Below, piece after piece: positions 9,193 to 57,829 of a stretch of 64,000 nt of DNA. This DNA comes from Eukaryota sp. TZLM1-RC. Its lineage: Eukaryota > Protista > Metamonada: BaSk clade. The stretch lies in NCBI GenBank assembly GCA_040285825.1, contig JAUPSS010000009.1:248001-312000 (forward strand). The letters run 5' to 3'. The position numbers were made by a program, and so were the translations under genes. Each line of letters starts with the position of its first letter. Positions within the stretch are counted from its first letter, which is position 1. The notes beneath the pieces were generated by a model. The model was not told where the DNA came from and ran no database searches. It saw only the letters and a program-made list of their open reading frames with translations.

Positions 9193-10818
9193 TCAACTAT
9201 TTTTTTTAAACCGTCCAATTGCTTCTTCAATATTAATATCAGCCAAATCAAAATAACTTTCACCATTATAAGTAACAACATCTCCAAATTCAAGAAAAAT
9301 TCGAACTAAAATACTCTCTACTTGCTGAGTACTGTGATTCAACCTTTCTTCAATCATATTTAATTGATGTTGAGAATCATGTTTTAAAGAACTCACAGTA
9401 GCCTGCTTCTCCGATAACAGACGTTCTCTTTGCGCAATAGCAACCGAAGCCATTTCCCAAGCAGTTATCGCTGATTTGAACAACTCAACAAACTCCATAG
9501 AAGTATACTTGATAAGCAGATCGATTTTCTGAAGTAAGGGCATTTGTAAAACTTGCATAACATCCTGGAACCTCTGAGATAACTCATCCAACTCTTTTGA
9601 CAATTCAACCGACTGTTGATCAAATGAGAGCATTGACAGATTGACCGGAGTCGTGGGGGTTCCAGAAAATATCTTGGATGTGTTATTTAGGGGACTTTTA
9701 GACCTTGTGCTTCTCTCTTCTCCATCGCGAGAACAACCATAAACATCGTCGATAAGCATGTCGTCTTTCTCTACGTGACTCTCCAAGTAACCAAGAAGTT
9801 CATCATTGATTGAACCACCATCTCTGGTGGAGGGAAGAATGTTGTGAGCTATTCTCTTAACAGAATTGGGATGTGGGAGGGCAAAGGATTGTTGGGCAGC
9901 CTGGTTGAGAATTGACTTTGAGTCTAGTTGGGTGACTGTGGTTAATTCTGTCTCGTCTCCTTCATCTCTGGGATCAACTGCCTGAACGTCTTCAGGATTA
10001 CGACTGTCATCTCTGTTGGAATGACTGTACAAAGCAAAGTCAGCCGGCAGTTTAGTGGGAAGAAGTGATCGATCGGTATTGTTCATGGTGGGAAGTGGAG
10101 GCATTTGGCAAGACGGAAGAGGTAGCGTGATGGGAACCTTGTCATTAGGGTAAATGGTGAAAGCAGGTTTAAATTCATTTGGGGAATCACTGATAACAGC
10201 TAATGACTTACCAAGGTCAACTGATCTGGATAGTGATGCAGGAGTCGAGAGAAGAGGAGGAGAAGGCGTTTGATCAGTTGTGGTCAGTGCCGACTGTGAT
10301 TGCTGATTTGATGGGCGATTTGATTGTCTTGGTCTTGCGCTTCCTTTCTGTGTTGGTCTTGTAGTGTTTGGCTTTGAAACTAGTAGTTTCAAATCGTTTC
10401 TCGCGGCCGCCCTCAGATGATGGTCTTGGATATTAAAACTTCCAGAATGAGAAACACCTGCTTCTTCCCCACTGTGAATTTGCTCTTGGTTTATTGCTTT
10501 GGTGTGCTTAGCTACAAGCTTTTTTAAATCGATTTTTTTGGATAATTCTACAGATATCCCAGCAGATGCTCTTAGAGAATTATCATCACTGGTGAATAGT
10601 CTATTATTTGAAAAGTGCTTTTGTTTTGACTTCCATTTTTCAGTTATTTTAGACTTTGTAGACTCAATGTCAGAAGATACACGACGCAACAGCTCACAGT
10701 ATTGGGTTTTAGTAAAATGTGGGGGTGTAGAAATGAGGCGGGTAAGATGTTCATATTGCTCAAGGTTATCGTCAGTGTTGTGATCTTCCGTGTTGGAGGA
10801 TGGGAAGACATCCGACAT
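9193..10818 (-). CDS. Coiled-coil protein with CCDC87-like C-terminal region
   Basis: 541 aa; C-terminal LQMPLLQKIDLLIKYTS..WE..EFGDVVTYNGESY recalls the CCDC87 family C-terminus (from memory). Confidence 0.5.
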   Translation of the reverse strand: MSDVFPSSNTEDHNTDDNLEQYEHLTRLISTPPHFTKTQYCELLRRVSSDIESTKSKITEKWKSKQKHFSNNRLFTSDDNSLRASAGISVELSKKIDLKKLVAKHTKAINQEQIHSGEEAGVSHSGSFNIQDHHLRAAARNDLKLLVSKPNTTRPTQKGSARPRQSNRPSNQQSQSALTTTDQTPSPPLLSTPASLSRSVDLGKSLAVISDSPNEFKPAFTIYPNDKVPITLPLPSCQMPPLPTMNNTDRSLLPTKLPADFALYSHSNRDDSRNPEDVQAVDPRDEGDETELTTVTQLDSKSILNQAAQQSFALPHPNSVKRIAHNILPSTRDGGSINDELLGYLESHVEKDDMLIDDVYGCSRDGEERSTRSKSPLNNTSKIFSGTPTTPVNLSMLSFDQQSVELSKELDELSQRFQDVMQVLQMPLLQKIDLLIKYTSMEFVELFKSAITAWEMASVAIAQRERLLSEKQATVSSLKHDSQHQLNMIEERLNHSTQQVESILVRIFLEFGDVVTYNGESYFDLADINIEEAIGRFKKNS

Positions 10819-14685: not shown

Positions 14686-15626
14686 TTATAAGAGATACTC
14701 TGGTGTACGAAGAGAAACATGGGGTTCACCTCTCCTGGGTGCAGGGTCGTATTGAATAAACTTGTAATCACCATTATCATCAAGTTCCATAATCGCTGCT
14801 TGATTACCACAGCGGTAACAGTCTAAAGTTAGAAATATCCAAATGGCGACATACAGTTTGGGGCAGAAAACACAGTAACAACCTTATTGTCATGGCTCCA
14901 ATTGTAACCAGCCATTACAAGCTGATGAGCTCTCACAAGAAGCTTTAGACTATTGTTATGGCAAAATGTTTCAGAGATATCATGTCCAAAGGTATACCCT
15001 GCACCACGAGGAGAAACTCCCCAGCCAAGGCGATCATCGGGATCTGACCAAAGGATGTCACACATTGCACCCTCATGTGGTGGATCGACTGTTCTTTCCA
15101 GAGAGCGTATTTGTTCGATAGTTTCCAGAGAAGGACTGAGACCTCCATGAAGACAAAAGATACTATTATTGATAAGTGCAGCTAGAGGTAAATGGTCAAA
15201 GAGATCAGTAAACTGCTTCCACATGTTCGGAGAACCATATTTGCGACAGCACTCGTCGTAAAAACCATAGACCTGTGTGATTTGACGTGACTCGTGATTA
15301 CCCCTCAACAAAAATACACGTTGTGGATATCGAACTTTCAGTGCAATGAGGAGAGCAGCCACTTCAATAGAGTAATAGCCTCTATCAACATAGTCGCCTA
15401 AGAAAAGGAAGTTCGTGTCAGGGCAATCTCCAGTGATCTTGAACATTTCTATCAGGTCCCAATACTGACCATGAATATCGCCAACAACAGTGATGGGAGT
15501 AGATATACAAATTACGTTGGGTTGATGTGCCAACATCTCGGTGGCCTTTTTACATAGAAGCTCCATTTGAGATTCAGGGGGAAGCTCGCATTTACGCAAT
15601 TGCTCTATTATGAGGTCAATATCCAT
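14686..15626 (-). CDS. PPP2C: Serine/threonine protein phosphatase 2A catalytic subunit (2 exons)
   Basis: GDIHGQ, GDYVDRG, RGNHES, RAHQL. The 32-nt intron 14823-14854 (GTATGT..CTAACTTTAG) restores [31 protein letters not shown]. Confidence 0.93.
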
Positions 15627-20049: not shown

Positions 20050-20343
20050 TTAAACTTCATGATGGACTACTTGGACACATTGACCCTTCTCAACTAAAAA
20101 AGAGGAAGAGTCAACCTGACCAAGTAGTCTATTTTCAACCAAATGGTAAGGAGAGTCTTCATGAGAAAAAGTTCCCTTTTTACCTTTGGTTGAACAAAAT
20201 TTCTCCTGTGAAGGTGGAATTTCAGGAGGACTGGAAATGAGCTCCCAGTAGGGCTCAGTGCAAGCTTCCTCCTGGAAGGTTTCACTCAGCAACAAATCCA
20301 CATAAATCTGAATCATCTTTGGACCAGGGAGTGCGTCTGACAT
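20050..20343 (-). CDS. Small hypothetical protein
   Basis: 97-aa ATG-initiated ORF, more GC-rich than its flanks; no motif recognised. Confidence 0.45.
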   Translation of the reverse strand: MSDALPGPKMIQIYVDLLLSETFQEEACTEPYWELISSPPEIPPSQEKFCSTKGKKGTFSHEDSPYHLVENRLLGQVDSSSFLVEKGQCVQVVHHEV

Positions 20344-21554
20344 ATTGTGAAAATAATGAGCTCATTTATCAAATTTTACACTCGTCACCCCATTCTCGAC
20401 TTCTGGTTGGTTCTGGTTTTTCATTCATTTCACCAGCAATTCCAATGACTATCTGACATTTATGTGCTATTAGACGATGTCTTCAACCACTAATAGAAAC
20501 CACATTACTTAAGACTGGAAAATTAATTAATTTCTTAAATGAATAGTCTCATTTCATTGAATCTAGAATGGCAATTCTTGTCAATCAGATTCAATTGAGT
20601 CCAATTCAATAAAATTTACAATTAATGCGATTTAGTGGTAGGGCTGTGGTTTGGTAAGGCTGCATTGTAGATGTTTTTAATGTAAAACTCTGATTGGTAT
20701 GGTTCTCAACTAGAGCTTGTCCCAAAAATAGAAAACGTTTTAATTTTATTTATAAAATAAAAATAGAGAAGTAGTACTAAGACAAGAAGTTTCATGGAGA
20801 GAGGAAAAACAGCAATGATGAGTTTGAGTTCAATGTTGAGTTTTTGAGTTTAGGATTTTAGGAGTCAGAGAGCTTGTAGAGATTTTATCCACTTTTTCCT
20901 CTGGTAACGTCCGTGCAACACTACTTTTTCCAAATGCCAACAATGAGACAGGTGTTCCGATACGGTTCCATACTCACATTTGTATACTTTTCTGTTGCTG
21001 ATGACATGCCAGATCTAAGCCGGTCGTTTCTGTCACAACTTACTTGGTTGCTTATGCATAACCACACATTACATTCTCTGAAATTGACCATAGATGGTCA
21101 ACAGCTATTTGTCCATACGTTGTTTGACCGTATTTCTTCAAAAATGCTTGCACACTTAAATGATAAATCAGTATTCTCAGCAAGGGGCAACAAAGTATAT
21201 GAATATAAGTTGAAAATCTCCATTTCTTTGGTTTAATTTTGATTTATCAGTGTATATCAGTTTTTGTTTCTTCCTCATTAATTGGAAGTTTTGGTTATTG
21301 TTTATGTTTCTAAACATTACAAATATTGAATTTCTTGGAACTTTTGTTTTGCTGAAAATTTTCCATTTTCAAGTGTGTGGATGTAAAAACCATTTTTTTA
21401 AACATTTGTACTTATTGAAATAACTATCTGATTGACTTTATTACTATTATGACGGTCAAAATACAATTTTTCTTATTCGGCCAACAATTTATTTTTAAAT
21501 GAAATTGAAAATAACAAAAACTGAAATTAAAAATAACAAATAATGAAATAAATA

Positions 21555-24500
21555 ATGGTTCAATCCAACTACATATGTATGCATTGTTACCTATTCACTA
21601 CACTTCTCCTCGCCCTATACATTTCTCTTGGTTTTTGTGAGATAAAATACTGGACATGTACGTCTGGTCATATAGATACTTCTTCTTGCTGGGTTCTAGC
21701 TGATTCATCACCAACTGAGGCTCCTACTGCAGAAGACTCTCTCATCTTTCCAAATCGTGTTTTATCTTCTGCTTCAATATCGGTACATTCATCACATGGT
21801 TTTTCAGTTCTCTGGCTTGGATCAGGTAACACTCTTCAACTCTTATCTTCTACTATCACAACTGATCGATTTATTTTTGCAGGTGGTGATGTCTTTGGGT
21901 CACCTGATTCAGAAGACCAGATTGTATCAATTCTTGAAGAAGGAATCGTCTCTCAACCAACGACCTTAAGCAGATCTACATTGAACGTTAGAGGCACCCT
22001 TACTATTGCTGCATGTTCATTAACACTTTCAAATGCTCATATAGTAGTACAAGATGGTGGTCAGCTCAAAATGATCTCCACGCAGTTATCGGGATGGGGG
22101 AGGAATGACCAAAGTCAATTATTACCCTTTAACGTGTTCAATCCTTCTGAATCTCAGCTAGAAGAACACCAACTTACCCGAATTCCGCTTCTTTTTGGTG
22201 ATAATATTGTGGACATTGGAGTTTCTGGTATGGGAAGTTTCTTTCTTTCTTGTTTAGGTTTCTTGTATGAGGCTTCTGGATCAACTCTTCTTCCCCAATT
22301 GATTCTTAAAGATATAAACCAAATAATTGTAAATGATCATATTCTTGCTAGGGTAGCAGACAGTAATACAATTTGGTCAAGGGGTAGGAATGATTACAAT
22401 CAAATCATTGATGACCCTTCCGATTTCATTGATTGGGTGCTCATTACAATACCAGAAGTAGAAGAGATAGTAGACATTGCTGTAGGTAAAGATTGTTCCT
22501 TAATACTGGGAAATAATGGTTTGTAACCCTAACCCTAACCCTAGGTTTGGTTTATTCTTGGGGTAGACGTAGAGATGATCAGGGCTTTGTCACTGCCACG
22601 TGCCAGCCGTTTGATTCTCCTATACTTGGAACTCCTACCTTGATTGAGCTACCTTTTGCTGTAAGTTCTATTTCAGCTGGTTATCATTTCTCTTTATTTA
22701 TCTCAACCAATGACGAGCTATATGGCTGTGGTAATAATGAGCAAAGCCAAATATCCCCACTTTCTGCAAAGTTTTTTGAAGTGCCCGAAATTATTTCTCA
22801 TCCAAATGATATTATTATTCAAGCCAGTGCCACGTCCAACATGGCGTTCTTTCTTAATGATCACGGGTATCTATCTCGCACAGGTAGGCCTCCTGATGTT
22901 TATTTTATGGAAAGAGTTTCTTCCTTCAGCACAGGAGTGGATCATGTTTTGCTTAACCATGATGGCGATGTTGTTTCTGGTATGTGGAATAATGATTTTA
23001 AACAAATTGATCCCTCCAGCAGTTCAGATCTTATCACAAACCCAATCGTTATTGGTGATGGGGTTATTGGTATAGCAAGTGGAGACAATAGCTTTTTTTT
23101 AAAAAAACAATCGCCCAAGCTTTTAATAGAATCTAATTCAGAAGGAACCTTGGTAGTTGAACATGAAGGAAGTTTTACTATTGATTCTGAATTTGAAGTT
23201 ATTCTCGACCTTCCTGTCACTATTCACGGAGAGTTTGTAGTTAATAAGGGGGAAACGTGGATGTTAAATTTGTTTATAGCAAGTGGACTAATTAAGGCTA
23301 CGGATAGATTAATAGTTACTTTACCCAGTGTTTTTTATCCATCAACAGAAATTAAATCTACCAACGTATTAGAATTTACCTTTGAAACTGAATTCTGTCA
23401 CCATTTAGAAGGTAGTATTTCTTTATCTGGAGATACAGCGGAATTAGTGTTGAGTAGAGGTTGCTTCAATTTTGAAACCTTGTATTTGCTCACTACTCCC
23501 TTGATTAAAGCTCAGTTTGGCAGTCAAATTGATTTCAGAGGTTTTAATGGTGTTAACAGTTTACTTTACCATTTAGTTATTGATGAACAATCTTTTGTTA
23601 TACTTGACGGTTTTAACTATATTGAAAATCTAACCCTAATTGATGGGTCACTTGAACTATATAGGGAATTAACTATCGGTGAATTAGATTTCTTTTCAGG
23701 AACAATTAAAGCCGCTAAACTGGTTGACCTAACTGTAACCCTTGTTCAATTTTTTCAAGGGGACTCTCATATTGAAAATTTAGATCTTTATGCTGAAAAT
23801 TTGAATATTTTAAATGGAGATGTTTGGCTTTCTGGTCAATTTTCACTTGTTGTTAACACTCTTAGTATCACTTGTGGTGAAACTTGCCAAATTTTTGCGG
23901 ATGACGTCACCGACCAAGAGCAGCTCACTATTAATGACAAGTTAAACATTTCGATGAGCAATTCACTTGCTATTGCTTCTTTTAATATCCATGTAACCTT
24001 TAATTCAAGTTATTTTTTAGTTTCTGAAGTTTCTAATGTTGTTTTTACTGATGAATCCTATTTAGTTTACACTTCATCTGAACTCTTGTCTGAAACTTTT
24101 TTAATATTTGGACGCCTTTCCTTTAGTGGAACCTTGATTTCTACTCTTTCTTCATTGGCAATTCAAGGTCAACAAACTGGTAGAGTTCACCTTTCTAATT
24201 CTGCCCAAATTTACATACTCTTATTTAGACTATCGCAAGTTGCTAGCATTATTTGCGAAGGTTGTCATTTTCAACATTCTTCCATTGGATTTATTCTCAA
24301 TGGACGTTCTTGCCTTGAGATAACACAATTTAATGGTGGGGTCATTGAATCCATTTCTGCAATATTGGGTTCAAGAGTTTATCTACCATCTGTATCAGTA
24401 GGTAGATTGAGTCTATCGAATTCCGAGTTGAAATTAACTGGTGATGTGATGATTAGCCAAACTGCTGGTTTTTCGGGTGTATTGATTGAAGGAGGGAATC

Positions 24501-27500
24501 TTACTTTGAATGGAGATGTTTCTGTCACAGGCAATGTTGACATGAGGAATATTAGGGTAGAGCTCAATAAAAAGACTATGTGGAGTTGGGGATCAATTAG
24601 ATTGGATCAGAATTCCAAAGTGTTCGTTAATTCTCCTTTGTTTTTCAGTAGTATTCAAGGGTCGAAACTTTCCTCTGAAGTTGTTTCTCCAAACCAAGTT
24701 GAAATTAATAATTTATTTCAAATCAAGAACAACCGTTTTAATGCTTTTGTTTTCAATGTTGGAGTTTATTTTGGGGCTTCGTGCTTAATAGAAGCAATAG
24801 ATGAATCCAGAGTGATGTTCAGTGAAAATTCCATAATAAATGCAGATGATCACTTTTCAGTTGATCAGAATTTCATCATTTCTATTCATTCTGTTCTTAA
24901 TTTCAATTGTTTCTGGTATTTAGGTTCGTATTTGAATTGGTCAAGTGGAGTTTTAATATTTGGGCCTAATTCAGTCCTAAATATAGAAATTGTAAATTTA
25001 ACAAACTCTGAAATCGTTTGTGATCAATGCATGTTCAATTACCAAATCTTAAATGATAGTTTTTATTTGAAAGAAGTTCATTTGAAGGATTCGTCTCTAA
25101 AACTGTCGAATGTTTCCTATAATCTTTCTTTAACGGAATTTCGCTCAGCTAGTTCGATCATTTTGATTGATGATTCTTACCCAGTTTTTTTGAATTTACT
25201 GGCTTTTGATACAAATTTCACTTTATCAAACCTAGAACTTCCTTTATTTATTGGTGATTTGGTTTGTTTTGAGTGTTTTACGTTTGGATCATCTTACTTC
25301 ACCTTAATTATTGGTAATTCAAGTAATTCTAGTTTATATTCTGAAACTGGTGTTATTAAACTTGATCTCTTTGCTGATCTTGCCAAGATTTATGTACTAA
25401 ATGAACCCAGTTTCTGTTTAAACACATTTGAATCATCAGTCATGTTTCCTATTGACAATGCTCTAGATCTTGCACCTTTTATTGAATTTTCTGCCCTATA
25501 TGCTGAAATGACAACTTATTATTATTCTGATTATGCAGAAATTTTGTTTTACGGATCTCAAGCTTCAAATACTGCAACGAAATCGTTGGAATTTTCCTTG
25601 TCTGTACCAGTGATCCAATACCAAAATACCATTTCTTTTGATATTTGCCCAATAATTGTTGAACATTTCGCACCAGCCACAAATGGCCTAAATTCCCTAA
25701 TCACTGGGCGAAATTTTGGTAGTGGTACAGTCAAAATTTCGTATTATTCCCATGAATTCCTGGTTACATCACTCAACCATAATCATTTATCTTTTGACTT
25801 TGTTTCTGGATCTGGTTGTCATTACATTTACTTGACCAGACTCTCTGATAATGTTAATTCTGTTGAATACTACTTTTGTTATCAGAAACCCAAAATTTTA
25901 GAAATTGTACCATCTGTGTTACCAATGGTTGGAGAGGTTTCTGTCATTGGTTCAAATTTTGATCCGTTGTCTACAGTGATCTCTTTTGAGAATGCCAAAG
26001 TAGTTGCCAATATCACCAAAATTTCGTTTACTTCCCTCCAAATTTTTGTTCTATCTGTGTGTGATGTGGTTTATTCTGAAATTGAACTAATTATTCACGT
26101 GTTTCCGTTTGAGGCTTGTACCAAGTTTTCGATCACTTTTCCAAAATTTGAAGTGATTCCTTCTGTTTTCTCATCAGAACCATCTTTTGTTGTGCTGAAA
26201 TCCAAAAATTTGGCAACTCTTTTCCAGTGCAATTCGGGTTTTTCGGTCTTTTCTCCCAATATTGGTGAAATTCCTGCTTATTACAGCCATGAAATGATTC
26301 CTGACGATAACTCCCACGTTGCATTGAACCTTCCTTTGCTAGGTCTTGTCAATGTTATTAGACTTTTTTTTAAGTTGGAACCAAATTTAGGGTTGGATGT
26401 AGAATTCCCAGTAACTTCATTGTATCCATTACCCTTGAAATATGCCTGTTTTGTGGATCAGCCGTGTGCTATTACTGTTGTCAGTACTAACAATATTTTA
26501 AAATTAGATCAACTTGAGCTCTTTTATGGTGAAAATTTAATGGTCACTTACCATTCAAAAAATTCATCTTTATTTGAAATTATTTTCGTTACTAGTGAAA
26601 CAGGAGTTCCGAACATCCAGCTCTGCAGCACTGCTTTTTGTTATAAAATCCACTCTTTACCTTTTGTAATCAGGTTTGATTCTATCAATCCACATTATGT
26701 CAATTTTATGAATATTTCGATGAAGTTACCTGTGGATCTCTTCTCTTCTGGTCTTGATTTCTACAGCCTCGAACAGGTTAAAAATTCATTAGTTGTCAAT
26801 ATTTCGGACTATGAAATTATAGAAGTTTCTTCATCTCTGTTAACGATTATAATCATCATAAAAAAGCCTTGTACTGCAACATTCTATTTTAGACTGTTTA
26901 ATGAATCAATTACTCCAAGTAAATTCTCTGTTATTATTGATTATTTTGTTGAGATACCTCCTTTTATTCCAATTAATTCTGAGGTTTATCTTTATCTTTC
27001 TGTACCACTTGAAAATTTGTTTCTAATATTGGATGGAATTCATCAGTTGCGTTTTGGATTTAATGTTTTCAACGTGTCCTTACCTGTTGACCACGAGGTT
27101 TTCCTATTTCATTATTCATTCACCTTGCCAGTTTCAAAGACACTTGATAAGCCAGTTTTACCTCAATTATTACAATCATTTTCTTTCTACACTTTAATAA
27201 ATAAATGGTCGTTTGAATTCACTAGCTTTGAAGTCGTTAATATTGATGGAATTCACATTTCTTATTCTGAAGATACTTCTTTGATAGAGTTGAATGCTAC
27301 AACTGCTGAACCAGGTACTTTTCATTTAACAGTAATTAACAATTTTTTCAATTCTTTTTTTAAAATTGAATTTTTTGGTGACGTGGCATATCCTCCATTT
27401 AGCAATACAGTATCATCTGTTTTCAACTACAATTTAACTATCAATTCTTATTTTATGTTCAATTTTTCTCATTGTACTATTGCTTTTGAAATATTTGCAG

Positions 27501-30370
27501 ATAATACTGAGCATTTTACTCAGTTAATTTCTTCAAAGCAAAGAGTAGATTCTTGTGAATATTTTATCCTTGTTGATCTTACTATTCCATTGTTTTATGG
27601 TACAAGTTCTAATAATGTTTATTTATTAATCCCTGATTTTGATTGCATTCATTTGGGCAACATCACAATTTTCAATTTCGAATTTTATTCAGATAATTAT
27701 TTGTCTATTCATGAACTTAGAACTATTACTATCTACAGTACATCGACTGTAGACCTTTTACATGGGGGTCTACAGTGGAATTGTTATCTACAAGAGCAAC
27801 GACTGGCAATTGAAGTGGATGTTGATTCTATTCAAATTTTCAATGTTGCAGCACCATCATTACAACATTATTACCAAATTTCTGTTAGAATTGGAAATTT
27901 TGAGGTGAGCTCTGTCAATTTACCTGTTGAGCCCTTTTTTGAGGAACAATGCTATGTTTCTGTTCATAAATATCCAAGAATTCTGAATTTTTCCTTAATT
28001 GACACTGAAAGTTTTGACCAAATATTCGATCCTGTCGTGATTAATAATCTCAGGTGTTGTCAATATGATCTTGACTTGTGCTCAATCAACATCCGAAACA
28101 GCACTGAAATTTTGGTTGAATTTATGACTACTTTCGATGTTTATTATGTTGTTATAACCACCAATTCTACCTGTTCTGACTCAAATAGAATTTCTCCATT
28201 TGTAATCAAACCAAGAACAAATACTGTAGAGAATGATTGGCATTGTTACTCTATCCCAAACGGCTTCACATTTGCTTTGACCTGTTCCTTGAACTTTGAA
28301 TTGAAAGAAATCTCTGAATTTTATCTTTACACCTTGGAAAATGTTTCTATATTGGAGTTTGAAATTTACGGTCATGACACCTCTAAGTGTCTTTCTCCTA
28401 TTGATTTTTCTGTTGGTATTACCTCAAATGGTACTATTTTAGGTGTCAGTAATGTGTCAGCACAATATTTTGACAGTTTTCATTCAAATTTTGACAGTTT
28501 GCTCTTATTTTATTCGGCTTTATTTTCTAATAATTCAAATTTTCTCCCTATTATAATCATTCATGTTGAATTAACCTCTCCTTTTTGTTATTCATCTCAT
28601 ATTGCTTCATTTCAACACAAGGTAGATGAGCTCAATGACATTGTTCTTGTCAGGTCCAAAATTTGGGTTAATCCAGGTCAAGATCATTTTCAACTAAACC
28701 TTTTTTGTTTTGATTCATTTAAGCTGAAGTTAAACTGTTCTATTTTGGATTTAATTGTTACAAATTCGTCACTTTTTATTTACAATTATCATTTTAGTGA
28801 AGATTCTTTGCTTGTCTATCCCAATAGTTTCCCTCTAAATCATCATTTTATTGATGTTTCACTGAATTCGCATCGATTCATTTTAAATTTCACTCTTTTG
28901 GTTACTTTTGACTCTTATTTGTCAAGTAAATTGATTTCGAAATTTATTTGTCCCATAGCCAACCATGGATTCTTATCATGTACGGTAATCGAATTAAAGC
29001 TATTTTATAACGAAATTCAAAATTTAGAAACGATCACTCAATCTCTTTCTCTTGAGGATGTGGAATTTTCCACTTCTTCTTTTGTCAATATCATTGTTAG
29101 TGCCAATGAAATTCAATTGATTGGTCCTCCTGAAGCATATGTTACCCTATCATTTGCTTATAATAATCTAGCTTCATCATTTTCAACTACTTTGGAACCT
29201 TGCCCTTCTTCCACGATTATGGTTGATGGCCAATGCTCATGTCCTCCCGGAGAAGAAATAAGTCAATTTGGTCACTGTACAAAATGTGTGATTGATACCT
29301 TTAATGAATTTCCTCTTGGTATATGCATCTCATGCCCCTCTCCCAGAGTTACCCTTCACTCTGGCTCTTACCATGCTGATCAATGTGTTTGTCCCTCGCA
29401 AATGTTGGACATTCAAGGGGATTGTGTTTCTTGTCCTCGCTTTGCGCAGTGCCACCATGGAGATCTTTCTTTTGTTGCAAGAGGGTTCATTTTCGATGGT
29501 TATGCATTGGGAAGGTCTCCATTTAAGATGCTTGTCAGGAATTCTTCCTGTATAGAAGGACATCTGGGCCATCATTGCATGGAATGTGAAGAAGGTTATC
29601 GAACATCCCTTTTATTTTGTTTAAAAACAAATTCATTTATCAATACTTTTTATTCTTTATTTTGTATTTTGCTTTTATTTGTACTTGTTTTTGTTTTTGA
29701 CGTTTATGTGTTTCCTTTGTGCTTTAAAGATTACAAATTGCTGCCCATCCACCACACATCACTTTTAAGGGAATGTTTATATAAAATATCCCATCACTAC
29801 TCCCAATGGAGGTGGTGTCCTTTTGCATTCATTGTTGGTCTTTTTTCTATCATTTTTTACACTTTTGGAACTCCATTTCTATGGTTTTTCTCAGTTGTTT
29901 GTTATTCAATGGGATCTTTTCTTTTTTACCCTTTTGTTTTTGTCTGTGTCCGGTATTTTTTAAAGCTCCGTAAACGCTTTGATTGTGCTCTTCCACTCAA
30001 AAATAGTTCACTTTTTTCTGTTTTGGCTATTCTTGTTTCATGTTGGCTAGTCATTTATCAATATAGAGTGGCAATTGATGGTGATTTTTCCGTCTCTATT
30101 TATATGGTTATTTTTTGTTATATAACACTCATTACCATTTGTATCGTCCAGATAACGGCTCATCAATTACCAAGCTTGGTGGGCATCTTGGTTCTTATCT
30201 TGGTTGAAGTCATCCGTCCCTTCTTTTATTTTAGCTTTCATGCTGTGGTTTTTATTGTTTTACTACCGTTAAATTTTAATTTCAATAGAACGTTTATTGG
30301 GGCAGCAGCTTGTGTTTGTGTATTCAGGGTGTTCTTATACACTTATTATTCCATAATTTTTGGAATTTAG
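21555..30370 (+). CDS. Giant surface/membrane protein (~2,929 aa, 2 exons): signal peptide, RCC1-like repeats, beta-rich region, IPT/TIG-like domains, Cys-rich repeats, multi-pass C-terminus
   Basis: ORFs 21555..22526 and 22547..30370 join in frame via the 26-nt intron 22519-22544, restoring the RCC1 repeat IAVGKDCSLILGNNGLVYSWGR; ITGRNFG and VIGSNF TIG-like motifs; CxC..C repeats; hydrophobic C-terminus. Confidence 0.85.
22524..22543 (+). repeat. Interstitial telomeric repeat (TAACCC)3TA forming the body of a 26-nt intron
   Basis: GGTTTG-TAACCCTAACCCTAACCCTA-GGTTTG. Confidence 0.85.
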
Positions 30371-53300: not shown

Positions 53301-53360
53301 GGACTTTGTTACGTTCTTTTGTGTTTATTTTTGTCCAAAACTTTGATTTTTTTAGACCTG

Positions 53361-53377
53361 GGGTAGGGTTAGGGTTG
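53361..53377 (+). repeat. Short interstitial TTAGGG-like tract
   Basis: GGGTAGGGTTAGGGTTG in AT-rich DNA downstream of COG4. Confidence 0.45.
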
Positions 53378-53626: not shown

Positions 53627-55012
53627 ATGTCAACTGCCGAACGTACACTTGTTTTAAAGAACCTTCCTCAAGATGTTACTGAACAATCCGTACCGTACCT
53701 CCCAAGTCGTTAAACATAGATTTCCCAGATGCTTTCCCCTTTTGGTTCTATTTTGTCAATTAAACTACCTAGAGGTCCAAATGGCTCAAAGGGTTATGCT
53801 TTTGTTGAATTTAGCTCCAAGTCCACTGTCTCTAATGTACTAGCTGTTCCCCTTTACCTTCACAACCAACCAATCATTGTAGAACCCCATGATCCAGATG
53901 TCATCCCTCCCCATCTCAAGTTTAAACGTAACATTGATTGGCAATGTAGTACATGTAAGAACTACAACTTTGGATCTCGAAATTGTTGTGTTTTTTGTGG
54001 ATCAGCAGCTGATCCTTCAACAACTGCTTCCCGTCAATGTCAATACTATACAGATACCCTTATTATCCGACACATTCCTCCTACCACGTCACATGCCGAT
54101 GTCCACGCTTTTATTAAATCTAACTGCAAGAAGCTACCACGGTCAGCTGTATTCAGTAGGAAAAAAAGTGACGTGTTTGTGGCATTTGACAGTCCCAATG
54201 AAGCACTTTCTTGTCTTCGATGTCTTCAGCGACGAAGCCCTTGTTCAGTCTCGGAAGGTGTTGTCTGCCCCGATCCGTTAACGGGGAATTTAACCCTTTG
54301 TGGAGAACTTGTTTCCGTTTGTTTTGCAAGGTCTCCAACAGCTGGGGATGGTAAGAGGCGTTGGGAGGAAGCGCCAGAAGAGTTGAAACAGAGGGACGGT
54401 ACTGTTGTGGAGAAACAAGAGGAATTGAAGGATGATTCTTCAGTTGATTGGATAATGGCCACTTTTAGAGAAATTGCCAGTGAGCGAAAGGACTCAAACA
54501 AGACTACCGAGCCTGAAATTCCAAAGGCATTTGTTTTTGACCAAGTTTCTGGACTTTATTATTTACCTGGAACTTTTAAATTATTTGATCATTTTAATAA
54601 TTCGTTTTATGAATTCAATCCTGACAATTTGGAATTTACTCCTATAGAACCCTTGTCTGATCAACAAATAGATTCTATTTTGGACACAGTAGTAGACGAA
54701 ACACAGACTCGCGAGGAGATTGTCATACCTTCTTCTACTTCTTCACTTAGTTTTTCTACTCCTTCTAGATGGAAAGGCTTCCCTGTCTTGAAGGTTGATT
54801 CTGTTTCCCGCAGTGATAGAGCCGAAGAGAGAAGGAAAAAAGAAGGAATTGTTTCCAGTAGACAACGAATTCAAACTTCTTCTTCCAGTAAACCTTTAAG
54901 TATCAAGAATAAGGGTAGATTGCTCTTGGAGCACTTGGGATTCGTTCAAGATGGTAAAGACTTAGCTGCATTTGTTCCACCAATGAAGAAGGGCAGAAGA
55001 GGTATTGATTGA
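53627..55012 (+). CDS. RBM5/RBM10-like RNA-binding protein (RRM, RanBP2 ZnF, RRM, OCRE, G-patch), 2 exons
   Basis: The 30-nt intron 53690-53719 joins LKNLPQDVTEQS to ISQML; KGYAFVEF; WQCSTC..NF..R..C..C; FDQVSGLYY; NKGRLLLEHLGF..G. Confidence 0.85.
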
Positions 55013-57063: not shown

Positions 57064-57829
57064 CTAATAACGGGGTTGTTGCCATTGTTGTTGTTGACCA
57101 GGGAAACCACCAGGCTGCATTCCAGGTTGTTGACCAGGGAATCCACCTTGTTGAGGTTGTTGCCATTGTTGTTGTTGACCAGGGAAACCACCAGGCTGCA
57201 TTCCAGGTTGTTGACCAGGGAATCCACCAGGCTGTTGTCCAGGGAAACCACCGTGTTGAGGTTGTTGACCAGGGAATCCACCAGGCTGTTGTCCAGGGAA
57301 ACCACCGTGTTGAGGTTGCTGACCAGGGAATCCACCAGGCTGTTGTCCAGGGAAACCACCAGGTTGCATACCAGCAGGTTGGATGTTCCAGGTTTGATTA
57401 GGAGAAGGAGGATTTTTGCAGTTCCAGAGATTGACGGGTTGGTTTTCTTGGGCTTGGTTGCGAGGTACATCTAAACACATTCTCTGGTTTGCTCTAACGC
57501 AGATCTGGCCATTGTGATTAACAAAGAAGATTTGGTTTTGCTTATTGTTACCACGATCCCATAGAACAAGTCCAGCACCAGCACGATGAATTTCGTTTCT
57601 CTCAACGTCCATGACAAGGCCAGAAGCTTGGTGGCGGATGGTACCATCACGATCGATGTTCCATTGTTGACTACAATAAGTATGGAATAAAAACAAACGC
57701 GGGATCGTTGGGACGAAGTTGTTGAGTGACAACACGGGCACCCTTTGGGTTGCGGCCGAATTCGATGCCCAACACCCAGTTGTTACCTAAACGGGTGAAG
57801 ATATTTACGGGTCCTTGATTGGGATGCAT
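57064..57829 (-). CDS. Ricin-B (beta-trefoil) lectin with Gln/Pro/Gly-rich tail, 2 exons
   Basis: ATG 57829; 28-nt intron 57671-57698 (GTTTGT..TGTAG); QQW, NQIF and NQTW motifs; CLDV. Confidence 0.88.
57070..57380 (-). repeat. Coding tandem repeat QQPGGFPG
   Basis: Repeated 24-nt-based units, some near-identical at DNA level. Confidence 0.9.

Follow-up and report, generated by a model that had tools for sequence, protein, structure and literature searches.

A mini-intron of probable telomeric origin in an RCC1-bearing gene of the metamonad Skoliomonas litria

Can a short run of telomeric repeats lodged inside a protein-coding gene serve as a spliceosomal intron, and how might it have come to lie there? 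The origin of spliceosomal introns has long been open, and there are few cases in which the source sequence can still be identified. The question is raised by a gene of Eukaryota sp. TZLM1-RC, the type strain of the anaerobic metamonad Skoliomonas litria from a soda lake, Lake Manyara; Skoliomonas is the sister group of Fornicata. The window, i.e. the whole 64,000-nt stretch of DNA analysed here, begins at an offset of 248,000 in contig JAUPSS010000009.1 of assembly GCA_040285825.1, which places the putative intron at approximately 270,519–270,544 of the contig. The original prediction, made from the letters of the window, was a gain of an intron from telomeric sequence. It is supported by an intron in the GenBank model, a splice module of the local type, a restored RCC1 blade and a 6-bp duplication. 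The 26 nt in question are probably a young U2-type intron that arose when a staggered double-strand break was repaired with telomeric filler. The analysis establishes the anatomy of the site, its agreement with the introns nearby, the restoration of the domain and the GenBank model; from these we infer excision in vivo, an origin in break repair and a recent date.

Anatomy of the telomeric insert

The insert occupies positions 22518–22549 of the forward strand and consists of GGTTTG, 20 nt of perfect telomere-type repeat and a second GGTTTG (Table 1), letter for letter as first described. Read on the forward strand, the repeat is TAACCC TAACCC TAACCC TA, and all 20 bases match the telomere unit. 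By chance, the window should contain 0.07 matches to the 12-mer CCCTAACCCTAA when one mismatch is allowed, and a perfect 20-mer is far rarer. For an exact 6-bp duplication to fall right at the two ends, the chance is ~1/4096 by our own arithmetic. On the G strand, the two junctions read ..CAAACC/TAGGG and GGTTA/CAAACC.., with 0 nt in register with the repeat.

Three public runs of apparent DNA type yielded one contig across the site. It is 358 nt long, corresponds to 22219–22576 with 0 differences and is unspliced; the library type of its run is a guess. Since the contig spans the site without a difference, the insertion is backed by reads and is no assembly slip, although the run is possibly the assembly's own sample and does not count as independent support.

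A pattern scan of metagenomes for either the filled or the empty site gave no match. The 26-mer formed by the repeat and one copy of the duplication also matches two unrelated metagenome contigs, one of non-coding AT-rich and the other of GC-rich DNA, both of which are uninformative. In the AT-rich contig, Ga0209364_1135840 (L009 818–843, +), the 26-mer has TAGTTT on both sides and may represent a further case of telomeric insertion accompanied by a duplication. Within the window, a degenerate short telomere-like tract, AACCCTAACCCTACCCC (53357–53374, −), lies in the spacer between a COG4-like and an RRM gene, with no flanking duplication visible. Upstream of the RCC1-bearing gene, at 20052–20197 and 20621–20749, contigs of the run that are ~92% identical to the window occur beside exact ones, which suggests diverged copies of a repeat element. 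Fanzor and MULE proteins were each found on one contig only.

Table 1. Positions of the insert, its host gene and the comparison introns in the window
Feature	Position	Strand	Remarks
Exon 1 of P9112_012551	21555..22518	+	321 codons and the first base of codon 322
Putative intron, 26 nt	22519..22544	+	Phase 1; donor GTTTGT, acceptor TAG; from gene range versus product length
Exon 2 of P9112_012551	22545..30370	+	2607 codons and stop
Left GGTTTG duplication copy	22518..22523	+	Bases 2–6 form the start of the donor
Telomeric repeat TAACCCTAACCCTAACCCTA	22524..22543	+	3.3 CCCTAA units, C strand in sense orientation
Right GGTTTG duplication copy	22544..22549	+	First G closes the putative intron; remainder starts exon 2
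Predicted fused branch-site/acceptor module CTAAC-CCT-AG	22535..22544	+	T at −9, A at −7; last G from the duplicated target
PP2A intron, 32 nt	14823..14854	−	Comparison; donor GTATGT, end CTAAC-TTT-AG; position kept in three Skoliomonas species
RRM-protein intron, 30 nt	53690..53719	+	Comparison; end TTAAA-CAT-AG
Ricin-type lectin intron, 28 nt	57671..57698	−	Comparison; donor GTTTGT, end CTTAT-TGT-AG

The host gene and its interrupted RCC1 blade

The host gene, P9112_012551, spans 21555–30370 of the window (+). Its range of 8816 nt exceeds what its 2929-aa product calls for by exactly 26 nt. The tract separates two open reading frames (21555–22526, 323 aa; 22547–30370, 2607 aa), which agree in size with those initially reported, as does the prompt stop: the unspliced frame runs ..LGNNGL and then meets TAA at once. 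Among single GT..AG excisions, that of 22519–22544 alone gives the annotated length of 2929 aa with an open frame. It takes out the filler and one copy of the duplication, and thus returns the uninterrupted sequence ..AATAATGGTTTGGTTTAT...

The GenBank protein reads ..CSLILGNNGLVYSWGRR.. across the joint. In an exhaustive protein search, RCC1 homologues align with it without a gap at this point, where IAVGKDCSLILGNNG followed across the joint by LVYSWGRR corresponds to the canonical blade IASGEDHSLALRSDGTVWSWGRN. The Pfam RCC1-like domain extends over the joint in one stretch with 79.5 bits when the spliced form (i.e. the GenBank protein) is searched, and drops to 26.4 and 32.7 bits when the two exons are searched separately. 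The claim that removal of these 26 nt restores an RCC1 blade is thus borne out by the annotated protein, by the homologues and by the domain score.

Outside its RCC1 blades (residues ~250–440), the protein has no match in 1.8 billion representative proteins or in a set of 5.8 billion clusters. No orthologue or paralogue of the gene was found by word-indexed and exhaustive profile-free searches, which returned RCC1-repeat matches only. The proteomes of sister Skoliomonas were present in the searched database, but they are distant (PP2A is only 76% identical). On these searches, the host gene is an apparent orphan outside its RCC1 part. A conventional, intron-less gene for a 297-aa RCC1 protein lies near retroelement genes ~10 kb past the window start (L006 11770–12663, +); it is no close paralogue of the giant RCC1-bearing gene.

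Genes in this genome were modelled by an RNA-seq-guided pipeline (HISAT2, GeneMark-ET, AUGUSTUS, PASA), and the models were manually curated for S. litria. A gene predictor trained on introns of this kind could call a 26-nt intron without RNA support.

Local intron pattern and the source of the splice signals

Annotated introns were recovered as gene range minus product length over ~105 kb of S. litria DNA, namely the window together with its flanks. Calling introns by the fusion of open reading frames was dropped as too noisy. About one gene in five in these ~105 kb has an intron. The seven introns of S. litria, the telomeric one included, measure 26 (the telomeric one), 28, 28, 29, 30, 32 and 37 nt, in line with the earlier estimate of ~30 nt. 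Their donors are GTTTGT (two), GTATGT (three), GTTTGG and GTACCG, and all except one of the seven fit GTWTGK. In each of the seven, a small sample in which one member was chosen by motif among three possible solutions, T stands at −9 and A at −7, giving YTNAY at −10..−6, then 3 nt and AG. The probability that the six introns other than the telomeric one share this T/A pair by chance is ~1e-6 (own arithmetic, at the genome composition of 35% GC). By its sequence, the −10..−6 module is predicted to be a branch site of the kind that Giardia has fused to its acceptor.

The composite motif has six matches in the window against 2.8 expected, and half of the six are annotated introns. The motif is thus not rare by itself and supports an intron only together with exact restoration of the frame. 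Three other annotated features do not carry the fused module: a 62-nt "intron" in an NFYB-like gene (L003 17237–17646, −), and "introns" of 334 and 105 nt in retroelement RT/integrase genes (L004 15767–17006 and 17188–18855, +). All three look like artefacts of the gene models.

The telomeric sequence conforms to the local pattern in every part, in that its 26 nt fall within the 26–37-nt range, its donor is GTTTGT and it ends in CTAAC-CCT-AG. This supports reading it as a putative U2-type spliceosomal intron of the Skoliomonas pattern that would be excised in vivo. The donor is shared with the lectin intron and CTAAC with the PP2A intron (Table 1), both as originally noted. The donor combines GTTTG of the duplicated target, which follows a first G, with the first T of the filler. 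The filler also carries the branch-type CTAAC and the TA of the acceptor, whose final G is the first base of the right GGTTTG, and the CTAG acceptor is thus assembled as had been proposed. Owing to the 6-nt repeat unit, CTAAC lies exactly one period ahead of the CTA that makes the acceptor with the next G. With fewer than three telomeric units, the intron would be under the shortest length seen. The exon flanks of the six other introns share no consensus resembling GGTTTG, which argues that the duplication is a footprint of repair and not a splicing signal.

The strongest alternative is that a recent telomeric insertion broke the gene, leaving a young pseudogene, and that the annotated intron is an artefact of a predictor trained on introns of 26–37 nt. 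In its favour, the one contig over the site, from a run whose library type is a guess, is unspliced, and a gene that is an orphan outside its RCC1 part may be dispensable. However, the 2607-codon downstream frame is fully open at 35% GC, and the annotation pipeline used RNA-seq intron hints and PASA. Furthermore, a random insertion with a 6-bp duplication is expected to provide an in-register GT..AG together with the extended GTWTG donor in only ~1/2000 cases (own arithmetic). We consider a broken gene unlikely. The same odds point to a rare spliceable event that survived among many insertions.

Origin and age of the insert

A sister strain, Skoliomonas sp. GEMRC, has TTAGGG telomeres. The assembly of S. 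litria is without terminal arrays, so its own telomere repeat is read from the sister strain. The expectation of TTAGGG at chromosome ends holds for GEMRC, whereas the genome authors saw no telomeres at the contig ends of S. litria itself.

Insertions of telomeric DNA at breaks are known from mammals, where target duplications accompany 5–16% of the loci and ~75% show microhomology (PMC2246262, PMC7215372). In Daphnia, repair of staggered breaks has left newly gained introns with flanking direct repeats, 4–12 bp long, of the exon end beside them (PMC4202315), and the GGTTTG direct repeat on either side of the S. litria filler is a repeat of this kind. The sequence of events that best fits the site would start with a staggered double-strand break inside the RCC1 repeat. 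Some 3.3 telomeric repeats would have been used as filler in its repair, and filling in of the stagger would have left GGTTTG in two copies. The left one would then combine with the first T of the filler into the donor GTTTGT, CTAAC of the telomeric C strand would fall on the branch position of this lineage (A at −7), and the acceptor would result from the terminal TA of the filler and the G of the right copy. With the filler and one copy of the duplication spliced out, the mRNA would be identical to that of an uninterrupted gene.

How the filler was acquired is less clear-cut than the original prediction implied. With its G strand antisense, the repeat has an orientation that fits a right-hand end extended at its 3' overhang ..CAAACC and then sealed by end joining. 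The telomerase signature, bases in register at the break, is absent, which puts the site in a class that is a minority in mammals. Capture of a loose telomeric fragment is as likely as direct action of telomerase because no junction base is in register, and the lack of microhomology at either junction weakens the case for a direct role of telomerase. Template-switch and fold-back models, which draw on the likeness of GGTTTG to GGTTAG at five of six positions, were rejected since they predict the opposite orientation of the repeat.

Apart from repair, the 26 nt might be a copy of an existing telomere-like mini-intron, moved here by reverse splicing or by introner-like transposition. Supposing that the first five bases of the 26-mer agree with the beginning of exon 2 by coincidence, the mobile unit could be the entire 26-mer, but a coincidence over 5–6 nt has a chance of ~1e-3. 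Moreover, no second copy of the 26-mer was found in ~150 kb (the window and eight fetched loci), neither terminal inverted repeats nor transposon features occur in the 26-nt unit, and a transposon would need more than 20 nt. Introns of telomeric origin would in any event look alike, since their filler never differs in sequence. A relocated copy is quite improbable.

The PP2A intron provides a measure of what an old intron looks like in this genus. It interrupts the same codon (..FSAPN/YCYRCGNQ..) in S. litria, GEM-RC1 and TZLM3-RCL, where it is 32, 29 and 32 nt long, respectively (the last two at L007 ~10779–10807 and L008 ~10782–10813). The three introns have unrelated interiors and share no more than GTWTGT and YTNAY-N3-AG. 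With an interior that has diverged and is non-repetitive in all three species, this intron indicates that old Skoliomonas introns are not repetitive. The RCC1 intron has a perfect repeat over 20 of 20 bases with both copies of the duplication intact, so the event looks recent and the putative intron young.

The same comparison bears on a scenario in which an old intron became telomere-like through slippage of a hexamer that holds the CTAAC branch site. CTAAC does belong to the normal branch module, and hexamer slippage could in principle extend it. However, slippage leaves the exact 6-bp duplication at both ends unexplained, the conserved PP2A intron has acquired no such repeat in three species, and the telomere unit continues without a single deviation over 20 nt, all of which makes this scenario very improbable.

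Finally, long-read assemblies can be misjoined at telomeric repeats, but telomeric reads wrongly placed inside the gene by assembly or polishing are a barely credible source of an insert that sits 270 kb inside a 949-kb contig, has the same gene continuing in frame on both flanks, carries a duplication and is spanned by the 358-nt short-read contig with 0 differences.

Relation to known systems and meaning for Skoliomonas

An origin of the RCC1 intron in staggered-break repair would place it next to the newly gained introns of Daphnia pulex (PMC4202315; end-joining model, PMC3020277). In both, an exonic insert lies between short direct repeats (4–12 bp in Daphnia, 6 bp here), and splicing takes, or in S. 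litria would take, one copy of the repeat along with the insert. Unlike the filler in Daphnia, which is unknown or mixed and belongs to longer introns, that of S. litria is pure telomeric repeat and contributes both the branch site and the greater part of the acceptor. A further difference is presence/absence polymorphism, which is a feature of the Daphnia introns.

The insert itself resembles the interstitial telomeric sequences of primates and rodents, which likewise consist of a few perfect hexamers at an internal site, sometimes with a target-site duplication, and have been ascribed to telomerase or to capture of telomeric DNA in end joining (PMC2246262, PMC7215372). The mammalian inserts, however, lie in non-coding DNA or in existing introns, and creation of an intron has not been reported for them. 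Most of them (~75%) have microhomology, of which the S. litria junctions show none.

In its splicing signals, Skoliomonas is similar to Giardia, Spironucleus and Trichomonas (PMC6679479), i.e. intron-poor genomes whose short introns have extended donors and, a fixed short way before AG, a CTAAC-type branch site. The Skoliomonas module, as derived from only seven plus two introns, is one or two bases shorter and looser. As with introners (PMC9860276), one splice site would stem from the target-site duplication, which allows exact excision. Unlike introners, the S. litria intron has no transposon body, inverted repeats or family of copies in the ~150 kb searched.

A full-text search of the literature found no description of introns made from telomeric repeats. 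Break repair is itself a known route to new introns, and what appears to be new is a gain of this type with a filler that is identified and pre-adapted. At this one site of S. litria, the filler, the footprint of its repair and the reason why it could be spliced are all readable. The site links two processes that have been described separately, the insertion of telomeric DNA at breaks and the gain of introns by break repair.

Beyond this locus, we tentatively suggest that telomeric repeats may be inserted recurrently in genes of S. litria with the C strand in sense, and that at least three units placed after a GT-containing target could make a working intron, a reading that is possible but more doubtful than the origin proposed for the RCC1 intron. 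It builds on the telomeric C strand, which spells the fused branch/acceptor module with a period of 6 nt, so that any tract of at least three units that follows a GT target could be spliced. It predicts strand bias, intron lengths stepping by 6 nt, a minimum of three units and duplications of variable length. If it is true, telomere-type break repair would be a standing generator of introns in this organism and, where the insert stays in frame, of Asn-Pro insertions.
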